Source: Histomonas meleagridis 2922-C6/04-290x
Lineage: Eukaryota > Protista > Parabasalia
Direction of reading: 5' to 3'
Assembly: GCA_020184695.1 (NCBI GenBank)
Contig: JAANOX010000141.1
Span: forward strand, 1 to 28,312
DNA length: 28,312 nt
A program made the position numbers and the translations under genes. Positions 9,756 through 26,992 of this stretch are shown here, in pieces. The notes below the pieces were generated by a model. The model searched no databases and was not told the DNA's origin. It worked only from the letters and a program-made list of their open reading frames with translations. The first letter of the stretch is position 1, and each line of letters begins with the position of its first letter.

Positions 9756-10228
9756 ATGAACGCTCAAAGAGATCAATTCAAGAGATTTTCCCTTGAGAAA
9801 AATTTCTTTTGGCATGGTGTATTAGCACTAAATGAAAACGGAGGACAAAGTATCTTTTAATTCTAACTTCAGCATTTTTTGATGTTCGAATGAAGAAAAA
9901 TGTACCAGGTGCTCCACAAATAGTTGGGTTGTACACGAATGATATTCCCCCTATGCCTCTTTCACCAACAGATACCTTAACATGTACATTTGTAATTGAA
10001 AATAATATGGGATTAACAACACAAAGAACTACTCTTGTAGAGAGCTCTGTTACAGGTACGGATTTGCAAAAGCTTATAGAGTCAAGTGAAAATGTCGGCA
10101 AACAAATATTACTCACAAACGAAAAAGGAGAATGGCAATTTATACAAATGGGTAATGTTTGGGGACTACGCTCTGTTGTTTTATATGTTTCACACGCTGT
10201 TCTTAACGAACATATTAAAGACATTTAG
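9756..10228 (+). CDS. Two-exon hypothetical protein, 149 aa (exons 9756-9849 and 9873-10228); weakly SPOC-like N-terminus
   Basis: ATG 9756 opens MNAQRDQFKRFSLEKNFFWHGVLALNENGGQ and hits TAA inside 9850-9872. Removing the 23-nt GTATCTTTTAATTCTAACTTCAG joins it in frame to the track ORF 9890-10228 (...GQTFFDVRMKKNVPG...). Confidence 0.75.
9850..9872 (+). other. 23-nt spliceosomal intron (phase 1)
   Basis: GTATCTTTTAATTCTAACTTCAG has GT-AG ends and a CTAAC branch point adjacent to the 3' AG. It contains an in-frame stop and restores the reading frame when removed. Confidence 0.8.
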
Positions 10229-10438
10229 ATTTTCATTTTGGAAACACAAACTTTTTTCGAAATTTGAATATGCTGGAAACGATTCAATTATTAGAGTTCT
10301 TGAAATATTTTTAAATGAAAACAGTGAATATAACATGTTTGAGTTTTTTTTCAATTATCAATAATGGTTTAATATTAAATTTTGATATTTTTATATTTGA
10401 TCATAAAGTAAAAAGTAATGGCAAAATTTAAATAATTT

Positions 10439-11152
10439 TTATTTTTTGGTACTTTCTTGCTCATCGTCATTAACAACAGGATATTCCTTTTGATCCTCTA
10501 AGAACCGCTTTTGTGAATACGCATACACAGCCCACACCGCTTCATTACACAAATTATCCAAGTCTATTTCAACGCTTTTGGAGTGCACTCCCAAATTCGG
10601 ATGATATCGAAGAACTATTTGCAGAAATTCATGTGCATCTTTTTTATTGCATAACTCATTAGACGCTTTAATGAAAGATTTGATTGTTGTTACGTCCATT
10701 TGAGGAAGCTTAGGAAATACGAATCGTGTTGGCGAATATTTTTGGATTTTTTCAGATGCATCATCAATTTCTTGGTAAAGCTCTTTTTCAAGTTTCATTA
10801 CTTTTTTGGACCAGTTTTTGAAAGTTTCTTCTTTTAATGTGCTAAGCATTTTTTCAAAGGAATCACGTAGTTCTTTAGCAGCCATGGCATAATATGAATT
10901 TCTTCCAAAAAATTTTTCTGTGTTTGTATGAACTAAAGAAAAATCGTATCTCAACTCTTTGATGCTTGAATATTCGTTTGTAAGTAGATTCCCTTGAATT
11001 TGACCAAGCGTCATTGGTTTTCTGATACGAGTATAATAATCTTCCATTCCCTCCATAGTGTCATCAACTGGGTTTACAAACATGGCTGATAATGGCTTTT
11101 CTAAAATTTTTTCCATGATTTTTATGCATTCATTTCGAGTATACTCGTCCAT
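10439..11152 (-). CDS. Single-bromodomain + ET/NET domain protein (BET/GTE-like), atypical acetyl-lysine pocket
   Basis: CIKIMEKI...SAMFVNPVD...DYYTRIRKPMTLGQIQGNL...YSSIKELRYDFSLVHTN is a bromodomain. C-terminal FLQIVLRYHPNL...VEIDLDNLCNEAVWAVYAY resembles the ET domain (VQIIQSREP...IEIDFETLKPSTLREL). Confidence 0.85.
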   Translation of the reverse strand: MDEYTRNECIKIMEKILEKPLSAMFVNPVDDTMEGMEDYYTRIRKPMTLGQIQGNLLTNEYSSIKELRYDFSLVHTNTEKFFGRNSYYAMAAKELRDSFEKMLSTLKEETFKNWSKKVMKLEKELYQEIDDASEKIQKYSPTRFVFPKLPQMDVTTIKSFIKASNELCNKKDAHEFLQIVLRYHPNLGVHSKSVEIDLDNLCNEAVWAVYAYSQKRFLEDQKEYPVVNDDEQESTKK

Positions 11153-11620
11153 CTGTTTGGCATAAATTTTTCAATTGAAATGTATACTGGCATTTTGAAT
11201 ATTTGAATGACTATTTGGTCCACCGCCAAAATAATAAACGGCACTTTGTAACCAGAATTGACAAATATTTGTTTGTTAACTAACATGCAAAATAGGAAGT
11301 ATCATATATCCAAATTTCTTTAAGTATGATTTATATAATTTATGATTATAAAAAATTATGGATTACAACATATAACATAAAGTCATTATAATGAAATTTT
11401 CGAAATCAAACAAGGTATTCATTTTATATTTATTTTAGTAATAGATTCATTCTAATGTACAAATAAAATAATGATCTCGTATTTTAAAAATCATCAAAGA
11501 AATAGTGAAGTGATTAGAAAACGATGGACGAATTGACTTATGAACGATTATTTTTCATCTAAATTCCGAATAAACCATAGAAATCGTGATTTACGATAGA
11601 AGAGTCTAAAAAACCAATTT

Positions 11621-12910
11621 TTATTGATAGCATTTTTCTTTTTTCCACAATTTGAATGCCTTTTTTGCCACATTAATATATTCTACATCTGTTACATATA
11701 CTCTCATTGCAGTTTCAACGAAATGTATTGGAACAATAGATGATATATCAGATGGTGTCAGGGTAACAATTTTATCTTCTGAACCAGATCTCCAAAAAGG
11801 AATTCCTAGAAGTGGATGTTGCTTAGAAATTCCGTACCTAAATCGAAGTTTGACATATCTCAATTTTTCACTTGGTATGTCAGCAAATTGAGAGATGTCT
11901 TTTTCGATTTGCTGCACTTGGCTTTGGGAGTACGAAAGCCCCTCTTCGTTCTTAGGGTTAACTCTTAGTTCTCCAACGAGCTTGTAGAGTTTCCTTTCAC
12001 AGATTCTGTCAGCTATCTTTTTTGCTTCTTCCCCACATTTTCCGGATTGAATTATTGTAAACAATCTGTCGTCTAACTTACAATAAAGTTCAACATTCTG
12101 AAGGGATTCTTCAAATTTAAAGTAAGGATCAGCTGCATCAAGCATATCTGTGATCATACAATCCATGGCTTGAATTGTGTGATGTTGATAAACTCTGTTA
12201 TGCATGTTGTTTCTGTTGAAGAAAAGCCGTTCTATTGTTTGCATTTCACTTATCTTCCATGCAAGCTTTCCTTCAACAACTCGACAATTATATATTAGCC
12301 GACTGAATTCAAAACTTGCTATGTTTAGGGATCGGTTAATGTCACGAACAAGGTAATCAAATTTGTCTAGATCAATATCACATTGTCTATTACAAACAAT
12401 GCATGATAAATATTCTGGAAATTTTTCATATGGATCTCCTCTGATATATGATGCAGCAGCATCAATAACATCAACAGGGATGTCAAGTTTGTATTTCCTA
12501 AAAATATGCTTTAAAACTTTGATTGACATATCTTCATGATCCCATAAAGGATCGTAATGGTGTGCAACATGTTCAAAGCAGTGGCTCCAAGGTCCGTGGC
12601 CAAGGTCATGACAAAGAGCTGCAATAATTACTGCTTGTGCATGTTCTGGTTGAATTTTGAGTTCTGGCTGTTGATTTTGTAAGTGCTCCATAAAAAGAGT
12701 TGCTAGATGAGCACATCCAAGGGAGTGTTCAAATCTAGTATGTGTAGCTCCTGGGTATACAAGATAATCACATCCAAGTTGACGTATATGTCTAAGTCTT
12801 TGGAATTCTGGGCAATCTATTATTGGCCAACAGTAACTTGGAATAAAGAGTGGACCATATATTTCATCATGAGGTGAGTGTCGTTTTGCTGTTGGCTTTT
12901 CTTGGGACAT
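11621..12910 (-). CDS. HD-domain dNTP triphosphohydrolase, SAMHD1-like (no SAM domain)
   Basis: IIDCPEFQRLRHIRQLG...VYPGATHTRFEHSLG...ALCHDLGHGPWSHCFE...WDHE...DLDKFDYLVRD...MHNRVYQH...RKLYK carries the metal-binding H/HD/D set and the allosteric-site residues of the SAMHD1 family. Confidence 0.92.
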   Translation of the reverse strand: MSQEKPTAKRHSPHDEIYGPLFIPSYCWPIIDCPEFQRLRHIRQLGCDYLVYPGATHTRFEHSLGCAHLATLFMEHLQNQQPELKIQPEHAQAVIIAALCHDLGHGPWSHCFEHVAHHYDPLWDHEDMSIKVLKHIFRKYKLDIPVDVIDAAASYIRGDPYEKFPEYLSCIVCNRQCDIDLDKFDYLVRDINRSLNIASFEFSRLIYNCRVVEGKLAWKISEMQTIERLFFNRNNMHNRVYQHHTIQAMDCMITDMLDAADPYFKFEESLQNVELYCKLDDRLFTIIQSGKCGEEAKKIADRICERKLYKLVGELRVNPKNEEGLSYSQSQVQQIEKDISQFADIPSEKLRYVKLRFRYGISKQHPLLGIPFWRSGSEDKIVTLTPSDISSIVPIHFVETAMRVYVTDVEYINVAKKAFKLWKKEKCYQ

Positions 12911-12969
12911 AAATTACCATTTTTTCAATTGTTGTCTGGTCAAATAAACCATAAAAGTGACATAGAAGA

Positions 12970-13806
12970 ATGTCTGTTGACGATTTAAGAGAAAACTTTT
13001 ACCTTGGATTTTATGCAAAAGTGATTTCTATTGGTGCTGGATTACCTAAAGATAATGAAGAAGTTGAATTTCTTGTTTTACGATCTAGATTAGCTCAAAA
13101 CCAAATTGATTTTGTTCTCAACGCGACTCGTTCACAAAGCAACAATGTGCAAAAAGGACTATATATTTTAGCAACAGCATTAAAGTCAGGCAAAAAAGAA
13201 GAAATGGAATCACTTCTTGAAGGTTCTGACAATTCTCTCATCAAAACATCACAATATTACAGCATTTGCATTGCTATTATCAATTTGCATCTTTCTCGTT
13301 ATATAGAAGCCTATGAAGCACTTATGGGAAATACACATACAGAAGCAATTGCACTTAGAATACAATCATTACTCTCAATAAATCGCCCAGACTTAGCTGA
13401 GGAAGAACTTTCCAGTCTTCAAAATACAATTGTCTCAACCTTATGTTCTGCATATGTTTCATTATTCAAAGACAAAGAATCCACAAAGAATGCGCTCTTT
13501 GCTCTTCTTGATCTCTCCGAAATGTACGATCCATCCCCCATCCTAACTAACGTTATTGCTGTTTGTCACTTCGCAATCGAAGAATGGGAAAATGGCCGAA
13601 ACGCGATACAAAATGCGGAATCGCTTTTCCAAAACGACGAAGCAACAACCATAAATGTTGGCGTTGCGTTGTGTCACTCTGAGGACTATGGAAAACTAAA
13701 AACACAAATAGAACTCATCAAAAGTATGAAGAATAAATATACATCAAAAATCGAAGAAATGTTAAAAGATTTCGATGATACAGCAGAAAGAATAAAAGAT
13801 CAGTAA
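12970..13806 (+). CDS. COPE: Coatomer subunit epsilon (COPI)
   Basis: DDLRENFYLGFYAKVI matches the epsilon-COP N-terminus. It also has RSRLAQNQ, EAIALRIQSLLSINRPDLAEEEL, NVIAVCHFAIEEWENG and a TPR-like helical pattern. 278 aa. Confidence 0.88.
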   Translation: MSVDDLRENFYLGFYAKVISIGAGLPKDNEEVEFLVLRSRLAQNQIDFVLNATRSQSNNVQKGLYILATALKSGKKEEMESLLEGSDNSLIKTSQYYSICIAIINLHLSRYIEAYEALMGNTHTEAIALRIQSLLSINRPDLAEEELSSLQNTIVSTLCSAYVSLFKDKESTKNALFALLDLSEMYDPSPILTNVIAVCHFAIEEWENGRNAIQNAESLFQNDEATTINVGVALCHSEDYGKLKTQIELIKSMKNKYTSKIEEMLKDFDDTAERIKDQ

Positions 13807-14677
13807 ATAACACTTTTTCTTTTATTTAATGTTTAAAATCAAAAAATATTTCCGAATTTTGGATTAAATGTTCTAACAATTGTTACTTTTGAGTATTTAA
13901 TGTTTTGCAAAAGAAATAAAATATTAAAACTTGTTAAGCTTAATAATAAGCATTACAATTCGTTCATATTGTTTAAACTTACTCCCAGACATCTTTTTTT
14001 GAAGTATTTAGTTTGACAATACCTGAAAATATTAAAATATGTTTTGAATAATTTTGGAAATTAAATAGGAAAGAATATGATTACATAATTGATTTCTTTC
14101 ATTTTTCCATATTTTTAAATATATAATTCTAATTTCACACTAAAAATTACATACATTTGAGAAGTTTATTTTCGATAACTTTTTTCTGATTATGTGGCGG
14201 TTACCCAATATGGCTAAATTTAGCGATTGAAATTGAAAATTGTTACCAAATAATAATTCTTAAATCATGAAAAAACATATCTGCACAGAAGTAATCAAGT
14301 AATTGTTTGAAAAAAATGATGATGATAATAAATTCAATATTTCCTGTTTCTGTGCATTTATCTAAACATATGCCTTTTGAAAACTTATATCAAAGATTGT
14401 AGTTTTTTGCATGTAATTAGAATCCATGAATAATAAATGATTTTATTGTTCAAAAAAATTTTAATTTTTGAGTTCCAATAGCTTTAAGCTCATTTTTCTA
14501 CAGTGAAAAGCATTATTATCCCATTGATATTAAAATTTCCTAATACACATCAGGATTCAAGACAAGTGATCGTTTTTGGCTCAATTCTTTTGATTTCAAT
14601 AAGTTACCACTTTTTGAGCGATGATTTTGTTTTTCATCATCACCGCCAAATTTTAATTTTGTGGAAAGTGCCTTTAA

Positions 14678-16732
14678 ATGGAATCAATAATCTCTGTAAA
14701 GGAATCAATCCTTGATGAATTTCGAAAGATCCCATATGTTTTTGATGAAGAAAAAATCTCAATGTTTACACCAGTTGAATATTCATTCAATGATAACTCA
14801 AAATATGTTTCAGGGTATTTTGTTCTTACAATTGGCACAATCTATATTCTTAAAAAAAATCTAAAATTGCATGACGAGATTTCTATCCTTGAAATAAAAT
14901 CTCTTAATCTCGAAAATTCGAATTTATTTTTAGAATACAGGGAAAATTCTTTTTCTCTTCGTCTCCAATTCTTCGAAAATGCAGAAGATGCCACAGAGCG
15001 CATTATTATTTCTTTAAATGAAACTATGTTTAACATTGAAGATGAGAATTTCAAAATTGATATCAACACAGATTCTTTACCAATACCAAAAATCAGCTCT
15101 CGCCGTAATGACTCATTAAAGAAGCGTGTTATTACTTTGTCTCATTATTATAAAATCCATTCAAAACCATTATTTGATTTTTCATATTTTGACAAATGGG
15201 AAAATAGCATCAACAAAACCACTCTTCAAATAACCTCGCTTCGTCTAGGTAATTTTGCCGCTGCAATTGGCCATGCTATTGCGTGGGAATCGACGATTCA
15301 AAATCTTACCTTATCAGCATTTCTTCCTATACAACTCGATGACTTTCTTTATTCACTTCTATCTCATACACGTAGTCTTAAAACACTTACATTTACTGAC
15401 TATAGCTCCAAACTTGAGAAATATATTTCCGATACATCAGACACAGAAATCAGCGAGCCACCTCCAGAAATACGCACCAACCTCCAAATTATATTTTCGC
15501 GATGTTCTCACAGATGTCTTGATCATTTACTTCGACAATTACGAAGTGCCATTTTTCCCCAAATGGCTTTAATTAATATGCGCATCGACAGTGATCAAAT
15601 GCTTGAAATCATTGATCGGTTAAAGCAATATTATATCTTACATCATGTCTCCAAGCTTAAACTTGCTAAATTTGATTTTTCAGATTGTAGTATTTCATTA
15701 GCAAGAAATTTTTTTAGTTCATTTAATCATTTAAAATGTCTCTACTTCAATGGAAGTAATGAACATACTAAAGATGGATCATTTGTTTTTTCATCATTAT
15801 GTTCATCATCTGCAAAACCTTATTGGGTTATATTAAACAACTTAACATTTAACACACCGATAGCTAGTAACTGTACTTTGTTATCATCGATTTCTGTTTT
15901 AGATGTTTCTACATGTGAATTTAATTCAGTTGGACTTAAGTCATTTTTAGAGTTTCTTACCTTTGATAGGTCAAAATTTCCATTGATTTTAATAGCGCGG
16001 AATTTAAAAATAAATGAAGATTCGTATGAAATGTTATCAGAAATAGAGTTTGAACAATGTTATCCCAATATTGTTGAATTCATTTGGGATAACAATATGA
16101 TTCCAAGTCAAAGTAGTCAATTTCTTTTTGCTTTTTTATACACACAAAAGAATTTAAGATTGGTTTCATTTCGAAACAATACAACCGATGATTCAACACA
16201 ATTATTGAAAGATATAATCAAACTTTCACACGGTTTAAAAATTTCAGGAATTGAAATCGAAGGTGATTTTGACAACTTTATTTTCATTCAATTCATTCAA
16301 TCATTGATCGTTTTAAGAAATTTGAAGTTTTTGGTTTTGGGGAACGTTAACGGAGGAGACAAAGAATTGCAAGCTTTAGAAAGCATTGTGAATGAATTAA
16401 AAATTAATGAAATTGGAATTTATGGATTTGAAAATAAAACTTTTAAAGAATTGACTGAATTCATGGATAGAGTTAAAAAGGCTAAAACTACAATTGCATT
16501 GGACATACAAAATCCATCAATTGACGAAATGAAAATATCAAAAAAGAATTCGGAAAAAAACGAAAAAATGAAAGAGAGTCTATTGAACGATTATGAAAAG
16601 TTAAAAAGAGTATTGAAAACAAATAAAAGAATATTTTATCATATGCAATGCCAAAAAGAAGGGAAGCTACCAAAGCCTGAAGTGTTCTTTGATTCTATTA
16701 GAACCAATTATAATGTTAAAAGTGCGATATAA
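14678..16732 (+). CDS. PH-like + RNI-type leucine-rich repeat protein (CARMIL-like architecture)
   Basis: 684-aa ATG ORF. N-terminal beta-rich segment GYFVLTIGTIYILKK...EISILEIKSL (PH-like), followed by LxxLxL repeats (IQNLTLS, LKTLTFT, LKCLYFN, ISVLDVS, LRLVSFRNN, ISGIEI, LKFLVL). Confidence 0.6.
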   Translation: MESIISVKESILDEFRKIPYVFDEEKISMFTPVEYSFNDNSKYVSGYFVLTIGTIYILKKNLKLHDEISILEIKSLNLENSNLFLEYRENSFSLRLQFFENAEDATERIIISLNETMFNIEDENFKIDINTDSLPIPKISSRRNDSLKKRVITLSHYYKIHSKPLFDFSYFDKWENSINKTTLQITSLRLGNFAAAIGHAIAWESTIQNLTLSAFLPIQLDDFLYSLLSHTRSLKTLTFTDYSSKLEKYISDTSDTEISEPPPEIRTNLQIIFSRCSHRCLDHLLRQLRSAIFPQMALINMRIDSDQMLEIIDRLKQYYILHHVSKLKLAKFDFSDCSISLARNFFSSFNHLKCLYFNGSNEHTKDGSFVFSSLCSSSAKPYWVILNNLTFNTPIASNCTLLSSISVLDVSTCEFNSVGLKSFLEFLTFDRSKFPLILIARNLKINEDSYEMLSEIEFEQCYPNIVEFIWDNNMIPSQSSQFLFAFLYTQKNLRLVSFRNNTTDDSTQLLKDIIKLSHGLKISGIEIEGDFDNFIFIQFIQSLIVLRNLKFLVLGNVNGGDKELQALESIVNELKINEIGIYGFENKTFKELTEFMDRVKKAKTTIALDIQNPSIDEMKISKKNSEKNEKMKESLLNDYEKLKRVLKTNKRIFYHMQCQKEGKLPKPEVFFDSIRTNYNVKSAI

Positions 16733-17318
16733 AAATAATTTTATTTTATTTTTCTATATTCACTCGTACCCTTTTTAAATAATAAAGTTAACGCATAAAA
16801 AACTGTTAAGTAATATGCTGTTTTTTTCACAAGATCTGATGGTGGAGGGGGAAACCACGAACGGATTCAATGATTATATTATCGTTTTCCCCAGAAAAGT
16901 ATTATCGTCTTATAGAAATTCCATCGTGTGTTAAATTTGCACCACTTTATTAAAGTTATAGAAAACTTTTCGTTTCAAAATTTATATAGCACAATTGATT
17001 TTGACTTTTTTATTTAAAGAAATTTACATGTAATATTGTTTATTAGTTAAGAATTTTCTAAAACAAATTTTGCTCTACATTTTTTTTTTAAAGATTGAAT
17101 CAAACGCATGAGGTTTTGTTGGTCCTTTGTTGAATTCTGCATTTTAATTTCCTATATTATAATATGATTTGGCCATTCCAGAACAACTTAATAATCAAAG
17201 CTACGATCGTTTTTAGGTCAATATTTCTGAGGTTGTCATTTTGTAACCGCGTTTAGGATAGAAATTTTCAGAGAAGAAAGTGGAATTGAAAAGAATTAAC
17301 GTCTGACTGCAGCCAACA

Positions 17319-18800
17319 ATGGAGAAAAACGAAATTCAAAAATTGCACCTACGTAGGTCATCCCGTTTATCTTCTGTATCATCTGAGGATACTTTTCAAT
17401 TATTCCAAGGTGAGAGTGGATATTATTCGGCATTATTTGAATTTTCTCAGGGTGCTGCTCCATCTGCTTTTTGGGAATATGGAAAAACTTCCGGAATAAC
17501 AGATTTTACAGCATTTATGAATGCTGTAGTCAATACGCCTGCTAACCCAAATTCTTATGATTCATGTGAACTACCAATTACCACAGTAACATCCAAGTAT
17601 GAATCTGCTTATTATATTGCTGTTTATACACAGGTTTATGATATAGATGCCAGAGGGTTTTCCCGTTCCGTTGTATTTGTTATAGCAAATCAATCAAAAG
17701 AAATGATTTATGCAATTCAATATTCTAGGCAACAACAAATAAACAATATTATAAGCAAGATACAACATAATACAGTTGCTTCGTTTCCACAAGATTTAAT
17801 GAAATTTGCTTCATCACTACAAAAAACAATTGATGCCAATTCTGAAGATGATTCAATATCAATTCTCAGGGCGAAGTTTGATGCACTCAAGCCAATATTA
17901 AAGCACTTTAATATCACAGAAATTGATGAATCTATAGGTGAAACCAAAAATCCCAGTTATTTCATGATTGTTAATAACGATCTCAGACCTATTAAAGTTC
18001 TAATTCACTTTACTGAGCTTGACCATACTCTCGATAACTTTGTTACACACCTTCCTCCTTCTCCAATCCTTGCTACAATTGAAAATCAAGCGAGTTACGA
18101 AGAAGATTTTCCAATGATTGATTTCGGCGGTTATTTCGGCTGTTATTCCAATTTAGTATTGGAAGTACTTCAAGATGAATATAACTTATCTAAGTTTAAA
18201 CTCACTGAGCTTGTGGCGAACAAATCCTTTTTTTATTGTGCGTTCACCGTTCTTAGTGGCCAAACCTTAGTTATTCGTTCGCAAAACACCGAAGAAGCAA
18301 TGTCACTTGCCAAGCGTTTTTCCATGTTATCACCATTCTTTAAGCCGCATTATGTTGCACAAATTGACAATGCTAATGCGTTAATGTGTCTTAAATATTC
18401 CATTGTTGTAGTTAAAAACTTTGAGCAAAAGAACAAAAACATGATAAGTTTACTTGATTTTGATAACAGTGTTTATTCAGGCGATGGATGTCCAGCGCGT
18501 TCTTTTGTATCATCAACACTTGGAAAAGGTGCCGACGGACCTGAGTCATTATTTTTGTTGATTTTGTATGCATCAATTAAAAGAATAGCAAATAAATTCA
18601 TCACAAAATTGGCAGAACTCTCCGTCGGAAAAAGATTACAGAAAGATAAAATACTCGAAGAGATGAAAAAAATCGGATTTTCAATGGAGGATGAGCCAAT
18701 ACTCAAGTATTGGATGCATTGTTACTTTAATAAGCAAAAATGGAGGCCTGTGCTAATGAAAAACAGTTCAAGCGTGGGATACACAATGATAACTTTCTAA
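17319..18800 (+). CDS. SMCR8/folliculin-family longin-DENN protein
   Basis: [12 protein letters not shown] resembles SMCR8 [33 protein letters not shown] resembles SMCR8 HLTLYDLEARGFVRPFCMAY. The C-terminal half has the DENN-like [14 protein letters not shown] segment. Confidence 0.7.
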
Positions 18801-18869
18801 TGTATGATTTGTAAATATTATGAATCAAAAATTCTTTTGGCATTTTCCATAATCTTATGTTTATCATGA

Positions 18870-19870
18870 GAAAAAAAGAAAACAACTTCTTTTACGATTT
18901 ACTAAAAATACTATGAAAACTGCATTTAATATCACTGCAACAGGAACACAATTCTGACAGCTATTGCTACAGTATTATCTTCATTTTGTTCGATTTTACT
19001 TATTTCGAAGTTATCATAAGAAAAAGTGAAATTAGAATAATAATTAGTGATTACTGAATCATAATAAGAAATTTTTGTGTTTCCTTGTGTATATTCTTGA
19101 TAAATCACAGAAAGTGTTTCAATATAGAAAATGAATCAATAAATATGATAGTATGTATCAATGTTAAATTATAATTATAATTTAACACAGGATTAAATGT
19201 ATTCGATTGACTTAAAGTATTTGATTGTGAAAAAGTATTTAATTGAGTAAATGCATTTGAAAATGTGTTTTGATTGACTATAAGATTTCGTTTGCCATGG
19301 AAGACAATCTTTAATAGTTGTTCCTTTTGAAACACTTAATGTTCCAAATGATTCATTAGCATACGAATATAATTTCATAAAGTTTGGTTGTCTGTCACCA
19401 TCATAATAAATACAACTTAAATTAGAACAAACAAAAAATACAAAACATTCAAATGAAGTAACAGAATATGGAATTTCAATATTTGTTATAGAAGAACAAT
19501 AATCAAATGCAAATACTCCAATTAAAGTAACAGAAGATGAAATTATGATATTTGTTAATGACAAACATTTTTGAAATGCTTAATCTCCAATAACAGAAGA
19601 TGGTATTATAACATTTATAAACAAAGAACAATAAGAAAATGCAGAATATCCTATTGTGACAATTATAATTACATTATTCCCAATTTCAATGGATATTAAT
19701 AAATTCAACCCATCAAATGCATTTAATGGAATCACACTAACATTGCCTCTGATGATAAGGTGCGTTATATTATCTTTGTTTTTAGCTGCTTCTTCAAATC
19801 CATTAGAATTGTAAATAATAAATGTTACAATATCTATACTATATGTGTGAAATATCTGTACTGAGAACAT
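18870..19870 (-). pseudogene. BspA/TpLRR (LRR_5) single-pass surface protein pseudogene
   Basis: ATG 19870 starts a signal-like MFSVQIFHTYS. TpLRR units follow (LIIRGNVSVIPLNAFDG; TIGYSAFSYCS; IPSSVIGD*AFQKCLSLTNIIISSSVTLIGVFAFDYCSSITNIEIPYSV), with an in-frame TAA at 19582-19580. A frameshift then leads into an FSQSNT stalk repeat, and a broken TM segment ends ...PVAVILNAVFIVFLVNRKR. Confidence 0.85.
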
Positions 19871-20145
19871 AGTAAAAACAAAAAAGTTATTCAAATTATT
19901 TATTTCTTTGATATTAGATTGAGAAATTCGCAAAAGTTTTTGTTATTCCAAAAATAAAAAAGCATAATAAAAAATTAGGACAGCAGCAAACATTGTGTTA
20001 TCTGCTTTAACAAACATATAAAAAAGTTGAATCGTTACTTAATCCACATATACCAAAGTGTTCATCGATTTTACATTTATTGATTTAAATTATCCGCAAT
20101 TATAAAAATGTATATTTTATATTTATTTAATTACATAACATTATT

Positions 20146-21852
20146 CTAATCACTAATATTAAATGAATTAACCAACAGTTCAATTTTTTTGTTTCTTGCT
20201 GATATTACCTCATAAACCCCATTTCCGTGTAGAATTAGATCATCGTCAAATCTGATTTTCAATTGTTCCGCAATTCTCTTAAGTTTCTCAACAGCAGCCT
20301 TCATAACGCTCAGCATTTGCTCCAGTATCAAATCCTTTCTTTTTTCAACGGTATTTTGATGTTTTAAGAAAATTTTCAAATCATAATATGACGAATCGTA
20401 TTCCTTAGAAACATCTGCTGCTGCCTGCCAAAGTGTGAGGGCCTCGTCAAGCTTTTGGCTTTCGTCTAAACTTGTTGTATACTTCAAAACAAGAGAAAAT
20501 TTCTGTTTGGCAGAAAATCCGAGAGAATCCCAAATTTTTTGTATCTTTTGGAAAGACTTTTCTCCTTCGTTCTTTCCAAGAGCCATTTTAATACTCAAGC
20601 TTTGAAGGAAATCAAGTGATTCTGTATCTTCCAAAGATAGTACTCGATGATCTAAATCAATAGCTTTCTTCTTAGGAAGCTCAGCATTTTCTTGACGTTC
20701 ATCATAAGTTTCTTCGTTGAGATTTTTGTCAAGTGAATATTCTTCGTCGAGAGATCCATCATCGTGTTGGGGTGCCTCGTTTGTTTCAGGGGGATCCGTA
20801 AGTTTAAACGGTGGCTCGGGCACCCCGTCATATTCTGGTGGAATGAATTCAAATTCATCAACGATACGATGGAGTTGCTCGATACTGTTGCATGACTCAT
20901 CACCTTCACGGGGTAATGGATCAGTATCTCTCCAGGTTTCAATGGGATTTGATGATCTTGTTGATGGTGTTTTTCTAGTTGTTTTTGGTATTTGGACTTT
21001 TGTTATATTTGGTAAACGTTTATTATTATTCTGTATAATAAGAGGATGCCTGCAAGACATGTTTGTTGGGACGTCAATTTCTTCCTTTGGTTGAGTTAGA
21101 GGTGGAATTGAATTATGGATGGGATTAATATTTTTAATTGCTGAAAAATTAGCGTTGGGAATTGGGTTGCTAGTATCATATTGGTAATATGGAGGAAGAG
21201 TATCATTTGGCTTAAAAATTTTTGCTATTATTTTTAAATCATTCATTGTGGAAAAATTCTTTTTTTGTGTCTTTCGTGGCATTGTTGTACTTCTTGTCCG
21301 CTCTGCTTCGGCTGGGATTTCGTAATCTTTAAGTTTATCTTTGGGCATCATTTTAATATCAACAGATTTTAAATTAATTGCTTTTTGAATGATTTCTTGT
21401 TTAAGAGATCTTGTTGTTGTTATAAAATCTTTCATTTCTTTGTTTAACTGCGCCTTTGTTTGATTTGAAGATGATTGATGATACATTTTCCTAACATATG
21501 AAGATAGAGCTTCCACAAAATCCGAAACAAAAAACTTGGAGTCAGCTGCATCAAAGTATGGCAAATCTACAATCTCTTTAATTGCCGAAGAAACAATATC
21601 CAGGGTTAACCAAAATTTTTGATATGGCTCTGTTTTACATATTGCTTCAATGTCTGTCTTGTTAAATCGGATTTTATCAACATTATCTAATTTTCTTTTT
21701 AATGATGTAAAATTCTGATAATACCTTTGATCCTTTTGTTGTGTCTGATAGTTTGGGAGTCCATCTTCAATTTTTGGTATCACAGATCTTGGTGAAGGTG
21801 GTTGTGTAAGTGAAAATTGATCTTGATAAAAATCTGTAAAGCCATATTCCAT
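20146..21852 (-). CDS. Coiled-coil protein with a CCDC87/MAP65-like C-terminal region
   Basis: The first ATG is at 21852 (568 aa), although the frame is open back to 21981. C-terminal IQKIWDSLGFSAKQKFSLVLKYT...LDEALTLWQAA resembles CCDC87 LERIWxxLxxPxKxQxDMxIKYS...LxxxVxAWExA. The centre is Pro/acidic and probably disordered. Confidence 0.55.
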   Translation of the reverse strand: MEYGFTDFYQDQFSLTQPPSPRSVIPKIEDGLPNYQTQQKDQRYYQNFTSLKRKLDNVDKIRFNKTDIEAICKTEPYQKFWLTLDIVSSAIKEIVDLPYFDAADSKFFVSDFVEALSSYVRKMYHQSSSNQTKAQLNKEMKDFITTTRSLKQEIIQKAINLKSVDIKMMPKDKLKDYEIPAEAERTRSTTMPRKTQKKNFSTMNDLKIIAKIFKPNDTLPPYYQYDTSNPIPNANFSAIKNINPIHNSIPPLTQPKEEIDVPTNMSCRHPLIIQNNNKRLPNITKVQIPKTTRKTPSTRSSNPIETWRDTDPLPREGDESCNSIEQLHRIVDEFEFIPPEYDGVPEPPFKLTDPPETNEAPQHDDGSLDEEYSLDKNLNEETYDERQENAELPKKKAIDLDHRVLSLEDTESLDFLQSLSIKMALGKNEGEKSFQKIQKIWDSLGFSAKQKFSLVLKYTTSLDESQKLDEALTLWQAAADVSKEYDSSYYDLKIFLKHQNTVEKRKDLILEQMLSVMKAAVEKLKRIAEQLKIRFDDDLILHGNGVYEVISARNKKIELLVNSFNISD

Positions 21853-22105
21853 TCGAAGAAAGCTTTCTTTCCTTTTATCAAGTGCAACAGGTGGCAATGG
21901 TTGAGATGTTAATTCAGCTAATTTTGTAAGAGTTGTATGGAAGGATGAAATTTTTCTTGTAACCGCTAACGATAGGAAATTCTAACGAACTTATTTCTAA
22001 GAAAAAGTGTCCTAAGAACGTACTAAACTGCCACTTTTCAAAATTGAGAAGTTTAATTTAAAGAAAAATGCATTTTTTCAACAATTTCAGCTTCAATAAT
22101 AAGAA

Positions 22106-22400
22106 AGGGTAAACACTAATTACAGAATAAAAATAGAAGTTGAACATATTTTCAATAATGACTTTTATGCTTTCACTTTCGCGTCGTATCGAACAAAACT
22201 AGTTGAGGTAAGTTTCGTATTGTCACTTAACAACAAGACTGAATTTCCTGCAAATGCAATTTGTTCAATAGTTGAATTCTTTCTATTCTTGATCAACATA
22301 TTATGTATAGCTTTATCGCGATGAACTAATACTGCATGTTATACATCAGGAAGTTGGATTTCTTATGTTTTTGATATCATTCGATGCTATTTTTTGAAAC
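22106..22400 (-). pseudogene. Possible ORF remnant
   Basis: EIQLPDV*HAVLVHRDKAIHNMLIKNRKNSTIEQIAFAGNSVLLLSDNTKLTSTSFVRYDAKVKA* has 57 open codons between stops and no usable start. No family recognised. Confidence 0.3.
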
Positions 22401-22659
22401 ATCGGCTTTCGATGTAAGAATATTTGTATGAATTACAAAAAGCGCAAAAACTTTAGGAATCTCTATAATTAATACTTTTAACGGTCAGCTTATCTTATAC
22501 AATTTAACAATAACTATAACAGAAGCAAATATTTTTTTTTTTAATTTTAAGACATCAACATGTAATGAACATTACATTCTTACCACATTGGAACAAAAAA
22601 AAATGCAAGCAAATCCAAAAAACATAACATTTTGATTAAATTTGGGAAAAAAAATTTGT

Positions 22660-23781
22660 TTATGATTGTTTATGACTGACAATTTTTATACCGTTTTCAT
22701 AATACTTGTTATTTGTGATGGCATATTCAGAGAATATATCAAGACTTGCAAATACTGAACCACCCAACCAAGCAGAATATTTTGGATTTTCCAACGAAAC
22801 AACATTTATTTGTGCTTCTGGTGCTAATTCCATTATTTCTTTTTCTAAACGCTCATGGAATCCTTTTAACATTACATTACCACCTGAAAGAATAATATTA
22901 TTAAACATCTTATTTCGAACCTCTTCATTGCAATCCATTATTGCTTTGAAAAGAACTTTATCAATTCCATCAGTTTCGTTATTTTTTGGGTTAAAAAGAA
23001 TTTCTGTACATTCAAAGCGTTCACTGTTAAGACCTATAACAGTACCATCTGGAAGACAAGCGCCAGAAGCGCAATTACTTGAAGTGATTGCATTTTCACT
23101 TTCTTTTTTGAAATCTAAAACAACATAAGCAATATTTTCTTTAATTGTTCGAAAAATTGTTAATTTAGTTGGTGCACTGACATATGTGTTACCAAGTCTA
23201 TAGTTAAGAACTTCCTGTAAACTTTTTGTTACATCGATGCCTGCTAAATCAAAATGTTTTTCTTTCCCTTTGATAATTGATCCTTCATAAACAGGCACTA
23301 TTTGTGTAACGCCATCACCTGATTCTAACACAATTCCTGTATCACATCCATTAGAAAAGCATGAAAAAAGAGCTTGATTATCAATATGTAATGCAGGAAC
23401 TTCAAATGTTTCGAATAGTATTTCTTCCATCTTTTCACAATTTGCTTGACTGTTTGGTACTGTTTCGGTAAGAATAACTGGATGTTCATGTGAATTTACC
23501 TTTAAGATATCAAAGGTATAACTATAAATTTTTTCAATTTTTTCCCAATCCGTAACATTTCCATTATTAATTGCATTTCGAATTGCGAGAACGTGGTCTA
23601 ACTTGAAAGCATCGTCACCTATATATATACCATTTAAATTATTTATGTTATTTATTTTTGGTTCTCCAACAACAGATGGAAATTTTAAACATGGATAACT
23701 CATACCTGCAAAACCTACTCTACACATGCTTGAACCATTGTCTATGACTATTGTTTGAACTTCTTCATATGGAGTTTCCAT
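22660..23781 (-). CDS. Divergent actin / actin-like protein
   Basis: IVIDNGSSMCRVGFAG, VTDWEKIEKIY, EHPVILTE, LFETFEVPA, TGIVLESGDGVTQIVPVYEG, DLAGIDVT, IKENIAYV, LPDG, ERFECTEILFNP, NIILSGG, KYSAWLGGS. ATG 23781 is preferred over 23805 because the Inr TCATTT lies between the two ATGs. 373 aa. Confidence 0.9.
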   Translation of the reverse strand: METPYEEVQTIVIDNGSSMCRVGFAGMSYPCLKFPSVVGEPKINNINNLNGIYIGDDAFKLDHVLAIRNAINNGNVTDWEKIEKIYSYTFDILKVNSHEHPVILTETVPNSQANCEKMEEILFETFEVPALHIDNQALFSCFSNGCDTGIVLESGDGVTQIVPVYEGSIIKGKEKHFDLAGIDVTKSLQEVLNYRLGNTYVSAPTKLTIFRTIKENIAYVVLDFKKESENAITSSNCASGACLPDGTVIGLNSERFECTEILFNPKNNETDGIDKVLFKAIMDCNEEVRNKMFNNIILSGGNVMLKGFHERLEKEIMELAPEAQINVVSLENPKYSAWLGGSVFASLDIFSEYAITNNKYYENGIKIVSHKQS

Positions 23782-23788
23782 TAAAAAA

Positions 23789-23794
23789 AAATGA
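23789..23794 (-). promoter_or_regulatory. Initiator element TCATTT of the actin-like gene
   Basis: Matches the trichomonad Inr consensus, with the +1 A 11 nt upstream of ATG 23781. Confidence 0.55.
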
Positions 23795-24239
23795 AATGTG
23801 TTCATTTTTGATGTGATAAAATTTGCCAGAATTTTAAAATTTCAAAATATTTTGACATTTTAAAAATTGGAATAAAATTTTGTCAAAATATTTTTATCGT
23901 TCCTTTTTTCCAAAGTTGATCTAGTTTTATATGTGATATTAAGATATAATTCATTATGCTTTTTGATGAAAATAATGAATTGCATTTAAGAATGTGTACG
24001 CATTTGAGAATCTATTCCTGATTTTTTAGGTAGGTTGAGCTTTTTTAACCATTCCACCATTTATCTCCTTGCTGCTATGAACAAGCCCACATATGTTTGA
24101 TTCCAAATCATCTCCGTGGTGGTAATGAATGCATTCATTTTATCCATACTGTTTTTCCTTTGAATTTTTGGCTATAAAGCTCATGACGTCATAATGCGAT
24201 GTACCATACAATTTTGCATTATATAAACGTAAAATATTA

Positions 24240-24485
24240 TTATCGTTAAACTGGGATGAATACAAAACATTCATCACATCTCAATGACAAATTGATTTTA
24301 TTCATACGATTTATATATTATCATTAAACTGGAATGAATACAAAACATTCATCACATCCCAATGACAAATTGATTTTATTCATACGATTTCTATGTTATC
24401 ATTAAACTGGAATGAATACAAAACATTCATCACATCTCAATGACAAATTGATTTTATTCATACGATTTATATATTATCATTAAAC
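24240..24485. repeat. Tandem repeat, 3 x 78 bp (A-B-A variant pattern)
   Basis: taaac recurs at 24247, 24325, 24403 and 24481 (exact 78-bp period). Copies differ at only a few positions, and the middle copy carries private variants (ccc, ctatg). Confidence 0.95.
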
Positions 24486-24551
24486 GCATTTGTTTCATAA
24501 ATTATTAATTCCTAATAACGATTTTGTTTCGATATTCATAACTAAATCCTT

Positions 24552-26716
24552 TTATTGAATTGTTGCGCATTTTGCCAAGTTCCTTGGTGCGTCTGGGCTT
24601 ATTCCCTTAATTTTTGCAATGTGGCAAGCGAGCAATTGGAACGGGATCACGTTAATCACTGTTTGCAAGCAGTCGATCACGTGCGGGAGCACAATCATTT
24701 CGTCTGCGAAATACGACATTAACTCATGATGCAAAGTGTCGGACAATATAATTGGGTAACCACCTCTTGCATGAATTTGTCCCAACGTTGAACGGTATTG
24801 TTCGATTGATACATCACTTGGTACAGTTGCCAAAAAGATCAATTTCATTCCTTCTTCGATGAGTGTAATTGGTCCATGTTTCAACTCTCCTTCGTGATAA
24901 CTTTCCGCATTAGTACATGCAATCGTCTTTAGCTTTAATGTTGTCTCACGTGCAATTGCATAATTACCTCCTCGACCACAGACCATTATACATTTTTGGT
25001 CTTGAAGTTTATCGGCTATATGTTCGATTTGTTCATCAAGTTTAAACGCTTCTTCTAATGTGCTCTCTAAATGTTTCAGTTCTTTGATGATCGAATTCTT
25101 TTCGTCAACTTTAACATCGCCGCCAATCGATAACGCTAAAAGTATTATCATAATTAAGTTCGCAGTAAATGTCTTTGTGGACGCAACGCCATATTCAACG
25201 CCAACATCAGTGTAACATGCAAAGTCGACATTCCGCGTAAGTGATGAGCCTCTTGTGTTAGTTATGCCAATACAAAACGCATTTCGATTATGGCAATTAC
25301 TTAATGCTAATAACGTGTCAGCTGTTTCACCACTTTGTGATACAAATACACAGACATCATTCTTCGAGACACGGCAATCTCGTTCGTTATATTCACATGA
25401 AAACTCAAATTGGATAACAGAAGGAATGAAATCTTCAAGAACTGTACGCGACGCAATCACTGCGTTGTATGAGCTGCCTGATCCAATGAAGATAAAACGT
25501 CGCGCTTTTTGTAGTTTGGGTAAAAACTCATTAATCCCTGGAATGTTTACAGTGTTGTCGTCGAAGTTAACATAACGATTTACCATTTTTTGAAGTATTT
25601 CCGGTTGTTGCTTGATTTCTGAAATTGTGAAATTGGTGGTATCCTTAGGTAATATGCTATAGACTTCTGACTTTGGTATATGTACAATATTTCGTGTTTC
25701 ATCGGGATCATTACCAATGTTATATATGATAATTCCTTGCTTTGTAAAATGAACGATATCATAATCATGAAGATATAATACCTCACACGTTTCTTCACAA
25801 AATGATTGGGCATCAGATGATATAAAGATTTCATCTGGTGGTGGAATAATATAATCTGGTGTGACGGTTGTGTCGAAAACCGTAAAAGTGCCGTCGAAGG
25901 AATTGAGAGAAATGTGATTAAAACCGTTGACGGTTTTGGCTTTGTTCTCCCGCTTAAACGGCCGGTTATACTTGAAGCCAAGAACTAAAGGTGAAACAAG
26001 ACGAGTCGCAACACACTCATCTGGGAAAAAGCGGGATTTATAGATGGTGGACGCAGAGCCTTCAATAAGACGAAAACAATTCCCAACAATAACTGGAAAC
26101 GAGGCTTCAGGAATTTTGGTATATATATAATCACACATCTTGGCAAGCATCTCAGTGTCTGTTTCACTGTTGATTGGAAGAGGACCTTCATTTGGTCGAT
26201 CTGTTTCAACATGAATGACAGAACTTGGTTGACCTAAGGAATTCCCAGAAAGATTACTATGCTTTCGAACACCAAGCTTTTTTATAAATCCCAAGCTTTC
26301 CAAAAAATCACGAATTTGGGAATAGTTATCGATACTTCCATTATGAACAACAACAAATTCCATCCTTGGAGATGAATCTTGTGGGTGTGCATTTCCAACG
26401 TTAGGAGGTCCATGTGTTGCCCATCTTGTATGACCAATTGCAACGTGTGGACCAAATGACTTATTATTATCTTCGTTTTCAAGATATTTATGGAGGCAAA
26501 GTTTGATTTCTTTGATAGATCCAACTGCTCGTGCGATTAAGATCCTTTTTTCTCCATTTATGATGTCATCAAAAGAAATACCGATACTATCATGACCTCT
26601 ATAACGTAAGTTCCTTAATCCGTTCAGGATTTTGATAATAATCTCTTTTTGGCTCTCTGTTAAAAAGTTAAGGTAACCAAAGATACCACTGGAGTTATAA
26701 AATAAGCATACCACAT
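24552..26716 (-). CDS. glmS: Glutamine--fructose-6-phosphate aminotransferase (GFAT/GlmS), two exons (26716-26712 and 26688-24552), 713 aa
   Basis: The spliced start ATG TG|T GGT ATC TTT GGT TAC gives MCGIFGY. Other motifs: YRGHDS, GHTRWATHG, VVHNG, SETDTE, SQSGETADTL, GVASTKTF, LKLK, GELKHGP, PRNLAK. Confidence 0.95.
26689..26711 (-). other. 23-nt spliceosomal intron (phase 2) inside the Cys2 codon of GFAT
   Basis: The minus strand reads GTATGCTTATTTTATAACTCCAG. Its removal yields the invariant MCGI N-terminus. Confidence 0.92.
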
Positions 26717-26725
26717 CCAATCAAC

Positions 26726-26731
26726 AAATGA
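26726..26731 (-). promoter_or_regulatory. Initiator element TCATTT of GFAT
   Basis: Inr consensus with the +1 A 13 nt upstream of ATG 26716, supporting that ATG as the true start. Confidence 0.6.
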
Positions 26732-26992
26732 TTATCATCGTTTATTATCAATTTTCTATGCCCTTTGAAATAAATTGTTCAACATTATATTGATATATCG
26801 TTTTCTTAAACCGTTTAAATTAGGCAAATTTTGTTGTTCTAAAAAATTTCAAAGAAATACTTTTTTATTGGTTTATCATGCGCAATATATATTCTCTGTG
26901 ATTATTTTAATAAGTGCCACTACAAAAAAGGTTTCTCGCTTGAACATTTTTTGAAATTAGATTATTAAAAAATTTTTAGATTAAATAATATT

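Follow-up and report, generated by a model that had tools for sequence, protein, structure and literature searches.

Positions 1–28,312 of contig JAANOX010000141.1 of Histomonas meleagridis 2922-C6/04-290x (the whole stretch analysed, 28,312 nucleotides (nt), hereafter the window) carry, near the 5′ ends of two unrelated genes on opposite strands, two 23-nt segments that begin with GTAT and end with TAACTYCAG. They raise the question of whether these segments are spliceosomal introns and, if so, whether they represent a fixed-length class peculiar to this organism, as an earlier note on this DNA had proposed. The window is AT-rich (G+C of 20–36%), and the proteins recognized in it by Pfam are eukaryotic, namely IFT140, actin, coatomer epsilon, a bromodomain protein and glutamine-fructose-6-phosphate aminotransferase (GFAT). 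Judged from sequence, both segments are very probably ordinary GT-AG spliceosomal introns of the short class that is known as type B in trichomonads.

Two 23-nt segments within conserved genes

Each 23-nt string was located only once, at 9850–9872 on the plus strand and 26689–26711 on the minus strand, and neither appeared in 100 shuffles; TAAC occupies intron positions 15–18 in both, so that the places and common ends described in the earlier note are borne out.

The plus-strand segment interrupts a gene for a conserved parabasalid protein of 149 residues (gene 1). Its first exon (9756..9849, +) opens with the ATG at 9756, comprises 94 nt, i.e. 31 codons plus 1 nt, and encodes a peptide ending in NENGGQ; read on without splicing, the frame meets a stop after 3 codons. 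The phase-1 intron (9850..9872, +), starting with GTAT and ending with CAG, is followed by exon 2 (9873..10228, +, stop codon included), whose translation shares 50–63% identity with seven proteins from metagenome and transcriptome assemblies. Five of the seven extend upstream as ...FFWHG(I/V)L..NENGG(H/Q)TFFDVR..., and the exon-1 peptide of gene 1 aligns to the N-terminal part of P0121, P0123, P0124, P0125 and P0127. In this alignment the two exon products flank a single column. The aligned relatives have Thr in it, and removal of the 23 nt likewise joins A|CA into a Thr codon; therefore, exactly 23 nt must be removed. The region is uninterrupted in a more distant relative, found on two contigs of a genomic metagenome, and so the intron is not universal in the family; this relative was recovered by an alignment-based scan, while a metagenome scan with exon 2 alone gave no match. 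The gene 1 protein matched no Pfam family, and the protein atlas held nothing for it. A structure model of one relative (predicted local distance difference test score, pLDDT, of 79) depicts an all-beta sandwich with two helices, in which exon 1 would supply the first strand, and a Foldseek search with this model returned only weak matches, to a Trichomonas vaginalis C2-domain protein (E 0.015).

The minus-strand segment lies in a GFAT gene, where the strand reads ATGTG, the intron and then TGGTATCTTTGGTTAC. Exon 1 (26712..26716, −) consists of just these five bases, the ATG and the first two bases of a Cys codon; the 23-nt phase-2 intron (26689..26711, −) splits the codon of this predicted catalytic Cys; and exon 2 (24552..26688, −) has 711 full codons and the stop, with the SIS (4.5e-34) and glutamine amidotransferase (GATase_6, 1.6e-09) domains matched in Pfam and identities of 59% to P0001 and 57% to the Tritrichomonas foetus GFAT. 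The exon-2 translation begins GIFGYLNFL, and parabasalid and fungal GFATs begin MCGIFGY. Joining the exons rebuilds the Cys codon as TG|T and gives MCGIFGYLNFL, as in the relatives P0001–P0008; we take the rebuilt Cys to be the catalytic N-terminal nucleophile of class II (Ntn) amidotransferases. When left unspliced, the ATG leads into a short frame with a stop, and the first in-frame ATG of the exon-2 frame is Met109. The public model of this protein (P0007, 603 residues) begins at exon-2 residue 109, and so is without the first 110 residues. Thus, the contention that both segments are of spliceosomal type and have to be removed for a sensible protein finds support in both genes, as their predicted splicing would bypass the stop of gene 1 and regain the MCGIFGY of GFAT.

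The remaining two GFAT paralogues of the genome are uninterrupted. A hidden intron considered in the paralogue P0085 (contig 83, L033) was rejected, for the locus reads the start MCGIFAYINY unbroken, and the public start of P0085, MTDKTV, is ten codons late by a plain start-codon mis-call that involves no intron. Upstream of the interrupted GFAT gene, a further ATG with a 5-codon frame was observed at 26726–26738 (−), 22 nt before the GFAT start. Between the two lies a TCATTT that resembles the trichomonad initiator element, which suggests a GFAT 5′ untranslated region of ∼13 nt with the upstream ATG left outside.

A genome-wide class of modal length

A census of the whole 43.1-Mb assembly was performed with the reversed pattern as the control. 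The strict pattern GTAT-N10-TAACTYCAG yielded 20 matches versus 3 in the control. With the gap set free over total lengths of 15–45 nt, 113 matches were obtained versus 120 in the control, and enrichment was found only at 23 nt (20 matches, with 2 at 22 nt, 1 at 24 nt and background at the other lengths). A sharp genome-wide peak at 23 nt, with the branch-like TAAC beside the 3′ AG, is therefore present, just as the earlier note had expected of such a scan. Fixing the 5′ end as GT only gave 44 matches versus 39, comprising 20 with GTAT, one GTTT case that was judged real, and a random-looking rest.

The 18 further strict-motif loci were fetched; at most of them, a frame that opens with an ATG continues, once the 23 nt are taken out, into a long frame downstream. 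Pfam matches start or stop mid-domain at the junctions, as those of split genes would: across the junctions, the Ras match begins in two Rab genes at position 28 of the profile, otherwise at 61, the Arf match begins at 19, 32 or 35 or ends at 135 of 174, and an RRM is split 59/70; Mob1, Tctex-1 and AGC kinases are domain-continuous as well, and two Arf-like genes, an EF-hand protein and a cyclin are further supported cases among the loci fetched with the relaxed pattern described below. Both window introns and every class member read begin with GT and end with AG.

To loosen the tail, the branch-like A was fixed at position 17 in a relaxed pattern, GTATNTTT-N6-TAAY-Nk-AG. This produced 60 matches at 23 nt (control 31), 20 at 24 nt (control 85) and 20 at 25 nt (control 28), of which about 50, about 11 and about 6, respectively, were intron-like by our own judgement, meaning a T-rich body and no repeat. 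The class is accordingly estimated at ∼70 members under this pattern, about three-quarters of them 23 nt and the remainder 24–25 nt long, and is probably larger still if GTATNC/GTATNA and GTTT 5′ sites are counted. Support from both frame and domain or homologue is available for ∼34 introns, of which 26 measure 23 nt, 4 measure 24 nt and 4 measure 25 nt. What is invariant in the class is the spacing between the 5′ site and the adenosine of TAAC, at position 17 and rarely 18; this putative branch A and the AG are spaced 6 nt apart in most members, those of 23 nt, and 7–8 nt apart in the 24–25-nt minority. YTAAC or TAAT adjoins the AG at a fixed place, and it is from this motif together with T. 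vaginalis mutagenesis that the branch A is inferred. All 20 strict members have GTAT as the 5′ site, and two further confirmed introns have GTTT; TT lies at +7/+8.

Two claims of the earlier note did not survive this census. The length is not strictly 23 nt, since 24- and 25-nt introns with the same 5′ part make up about a quarter of the class, and TAACTYCAG turned out to be just one among several tails. Frame and domain continuity supports 24- or 25-nt introns in Rab, Yos1-like, Asf1, Arl, Mob1 and PH-kinase genes: the first intron of a Rab gene and the second of the Yos1-like gene are 24 nt, as is that of Asf1 (contig 153), in which the ASF1 Pfam match starts at profile position 24, while four Mob1 paralogues have introns of 23, 23, 25 and 25 nt at one site, and the same four lengths recur at one site in four PH-AGC kinase paralogues. 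The sequences thus indicate a length that is strongly modal, not fixed.

Several genes carry more than one short intron. The Arl gene on contig 3 (L001) has two, the first exon being the ATG only, followed by a 23-nt intron ending TAACTAAAG; its paralogue on contig 61 (L056, ∼583.2–583.7 kb) has three, i.e. one of 24 nt right after the ATG, then, past a 35-nt exon, one of 23 nt whose 5′ site is GTTTAT, and finally another of 23 nt near the 3′ end. Two 23-nt introns apiece were found in the genes of an Rbx1-like RING protein and Tctex-1.

Some matches were discarded. Long frames on the opposite strand enclose a 24-nt motif family of five copies and several more matches, which are therefore chance occurrences; the match in L060 is continuous Myb coding sequence, and the window candidate 19416–19441 (−) belongs to the coding part of a BspA-like repeat gene. 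This BspA-like leucine-rich-repeat gene (19193–19933, −) shows a stop codon in frame at a position that is Tyr in the repeat consensus, and may be a pseudogene or contain a base error.

Further loci were recorded as observations in their own right. At contig 3, 50560–50584 (L079), an intron-like sequence can be read as 22 nt (end TAACTTAG) or 25 nt (end ...TTAGCAG), both in frame; at 22 nt, if true, it would be the shortest of the set. On contig 179, two 23-nt intron-like sequences (29634–29656 and 29681–29703, −) lie 24 nt apart and would enclose an 8-codon internal exon if real. The start of an ankyrin-repeat gene on contig 34 (L003, ∼110.3 kb) is closely followed by a canonical 23-nt intron; the frame of the gene breaks ∼100 codons past the intron, and ankyrin-like coding resumes downstream. 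Finally, the 18-nt string GTATATTATTAACTTCAG occurs at least seven times over several contigs, and presumably belongs to a repeated element or a gene family.

Kinship with the type B introns of Trichomonas

Two intron classes are known in T. vaginalis. Type A introns are 42–196 nt long, with GTAYGT...ACTAACACACAG. Type B introns are ∼25 nt, with the consensus GTWYWD-N7-TCTAACAAACAG; 24 are known, three of them 24 nt and three 23 nt, and the 23-nt cases were validated by polymerase chain reaction (PCR) and long reads (PMC12316389, PMC13548475). Several lie in 5′ untranslated regions, and T. stableri has up to two per gene. The window introns are not of type A (>40 nt, ACTAACACACAG 3′ end), being 23 nt with the ends TAACTTCAG and TAACTCCAG, and type A introns differ further in their variable length, their strict 12-nt motif at the 3′ end and a branch A that lies at 7 nt from the AG.

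A direct link to type B is provided by a Rab gene. TVAG_416520 of T. vaginalis contains a 26-nt type B intron at FSE/NYV, in phase 0 and with the junction TGAA/AATT (Table 2, PMC6260720). The Histomonas Rab gene on contig 101 is split at this very position, ...KTFSE|NYVSTIG, again in phase 0 with the junction TGAA/AATT, and the TVAG_416520 protein (P0161) is 65% identical to its exon 2. Because this position is common to both species, the Histomonas short introns are identified, by sequence comparison, as the trichomonad type B class, inherited, and for the same reason the comparison argues that the class is older than the split between Trichomonadea and Tritrichomonadea. An AGC-kinase site (DNQ|l|II versus DNR/iEI) and the phase-2 Mob1 site after SK are consistent with type B positions as well, as read without a DNA alignment. 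The claim of a class new in kind therefore has to be given up, in view of this common Rab position and of the 23-nt introns already validated within type B of T. vaginalis.

The likeness extends to most features of the type B introns of T. vaginalis and T. stableri (Deng 2009; PMC6260720; PMC12316389; PMC13548475): GT-AG ends, a length of 23–26 nt, a T-rich body, conserved T's just inside the 5′ site, a branch-like motif adjoining the 3′ splice site, a bias towards the 5′ part of genes, and gene families that include Rab/Arf GTPases, Mob1, Tctex-1 and AGC kinases. There are also differences. The modal length is 23 nt in Histomonas versus 25 nt in T. vaginalis type B, and the putative branch A stands at +17, usually 6 nt from the AG, versus +18 and 7 nt; the type B motif (T)CTAAC places its branch A 7–8 nt from the AG, in contrast to the 6 nt of the Histomonas majority. 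The 5′ site is almost always GTAT versus GTWY, with TT at +7/+8 versus +8/+9, and the tail is TAAC-N3-AG with several variants versus TCTAACAAACAG. Roughly 70 members in Histomonas against 24 in T. vaginalis amount to ∼3-fold more in a genome a quarter the size, with up to three per gene and first exons down to 3 or 5 nt.

In Tritrichomonas foetus, the RABD1 protein (P0136) has the N-terminus MICFIVCFFFLTSE followed by VLIIGDS, which reads as if a short T-rich intron with the end ...TTAACTTCAG had been translated, and this stretch occupies the position of the first intron in the Histomonas Rab gene on contig 19; at the protein level, this suggests that the same intron class and tail motif are present, unannotated, in T. 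foetus. Type A introns coexist with the short class in the Histomonas genome: the type A-like motif CTAACACACAG gave 14 matches versus 4 in the control, ∼10 of which have GTATGT 62–113 nt upstream, several in kinase genes. At four loci (L020, L021, L022 and L027, on contigs 36, 46, 126 and 235), type A-like introns of 91–113 nt, GTATGT...CTAACACACAG, contain TGATGA and CTGA boxes, a pattern which suggests that these introns carry box C/D small nucleolar RNAs.

Shorter introns are found in other eukaryotes. Those of the Bigelowiella nucleomorph measure 18–21 nt and those of Stentor 15–16 nt. Mikrocytid introns are 16–17 nt (PMC10245619), so the earlier statement that 23 nt is near the lower limit for spliceosomal introns does not hold. 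The Histomonas introns resemble these minimal introns in a very narrow length range that implies a spacing constraint of the spliceosome; however, the mikrocytid, Bigelowiella and Stentor introns are shorter, number thousands per genome and have no conserved yeast-like branch motif, whereas those of Histomonas are few and have kept the motif. Our literature search found no description of Histomonas splice sites.

Recognition, alternatives and consequences for annotation

The assignment of the two window segments to the type B class is carried by the sequences themselves, the enrichment with its length peak, the restored proteins and domains, and the position held in common with a validated T. 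vaginalis intron. Three copies of U2 small nuclear RNA (snRNA) with the canonical GUAGUA branch-binding stretch were identified, which fits a normal U2-type mechanism. Some points weigh against the assignment. Protein word searches gave no full-length spliced Histomonas product for GFAT or gene 1, nor for the contig-101 Rab, and U1 snRNA was not detected with Rfam. Moreover, the census was motif-driven and biased to the geometry on which it was built, and the four introns found by frame logic alone within the fetched loci were two of 23 nt and two of 24 nt; the reversed control was uneven, with 85 matches for the 24-nt pattern, so that the class size is partly a matter of judgement.

If the introns are removed from RNA in the usual way, the signals would be GTAT (rarely GTTT), T at +7/+8, a T-rich body, YTAAC or TAAT with its second A at position 17, and an AG 6 (less often 7–8) nt further on. 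A normal U2-type spliceosome may read the 5′ site, branch site and 3′ site as a single compact unit, with the 5′ site and the branch site kept as close together, or nearly so, as is sterically possible, and this would account for the narrow length. Length-measuring recognition is an inference from the fixed +17 spacing. A stronger version can be put forward only tentatively, namely that a hard 17-nt ruler operates between the 5′ site and the branch A, one base tighter than in Trichomonas, with a 6-nt distance from branch to AG tolerated, and that such minimal introns have multiplied to roughly 70–100 copies with first exons of 3–5 nt.

Of the alternatives, the one closest to the earlier note is a distinct class strictly fixed at 23 nt, with a length-measuring recognition of its own and different in kind from the Trichomonas short introns. 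The exact motif is indeed enriched only at 23 nt, and the branch A lies at +17 and 6 nt from the AG instead of +18 and 7 nt as in T. vaginalis; but continuity of frame and domain also supports introns of 24 and 25 nt whose 5′ half is the same, Mob1 and PH-kinase paralogues have 23 or 25 nt at the same site, the Rab site is common with a 26-nt type B intron, and T. vaginalis itself has 23-nt type B introns, which together render this explanation improbable. It is more improbable still that the segments are not introns at all, being frame-breaking errors, traces of decaying pseudogenes or chance motif matches. Some matches are plainly chance ones inside long frames on the same or opposite strand, yet the count of 20 versus 3 in the control, the restoration of conserved N-termini and Pfam domains by exact removal in dozens of unrelated genes, and the GT, AG, fixed-place TAAC and T-rich body common to the inserts all speak against this explanation. 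A non-spliceosomal route, such as translational bypass or another excision system, is scarcely credible, given that all canonical spliceosomal signals are present in the segments, that one position is common with a PCR-validated T. vaginalis spliceosomal intron, and that a canonical U2 snRNA exists.

As ordinary type B introns, these elements have consequences for the gene models of H. meleagridis. The published annotation has 573–638 predicted introns, at most one per gene, and does not discuss intron sequences (PMC8529796); contrary to 'at most one' (PMC8529796), several Histomonas genes contain two or three short introns. Besides the GFAT model P0007, the 'GTP-binding protein ypt1 [Histomonas meleagridis]' entry of NCBI (P0184, 176 residues) takes an internal Met of a Rab gene as its start; the actual first exon of this gene, 28 nt long, is cut off by a 23-nt intron, and the model is left without the P-loop. 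Both late starts arise because short introns were missed. For gene 1 and the contig-101 Rab, protein word searches found no matching public protein. Of the many mis-annotated starts foreseen by the earlier note, these two have been demonstrated, and the number of genes affected would be at most of the order of a hundred.

Public annotation thus misses short introns, and by doing so truncates or omits conserved genes, as seen for the Cys of GFAT, the P-loop of a Rab and gene 1 as a whole; motif-guided re-annotation would correct gene models, of the order of a hundred in number, in a poultry pathogen of veterinary concern. For the parabasalids, the short-intron class is extended from Trichomonas (Trichomonadea) to Histomonas (Tritrichomonadea), and a second, tighter geometry (17 + 6 nt, versus 18 + 7 nt in Trichomonas) becomes available for asking how near the 5′ site, the branch point and the 3′ site can lie to one another. 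On this sequence-based reading the class is not a new kind of element; its value lies in re-annotation and in the comparative study of minimal introns. The 17-nt ruler, if true, would make Histomonas a compact natural system in which to measure the minimal U2-type geometry with a yeast-like branch motif.

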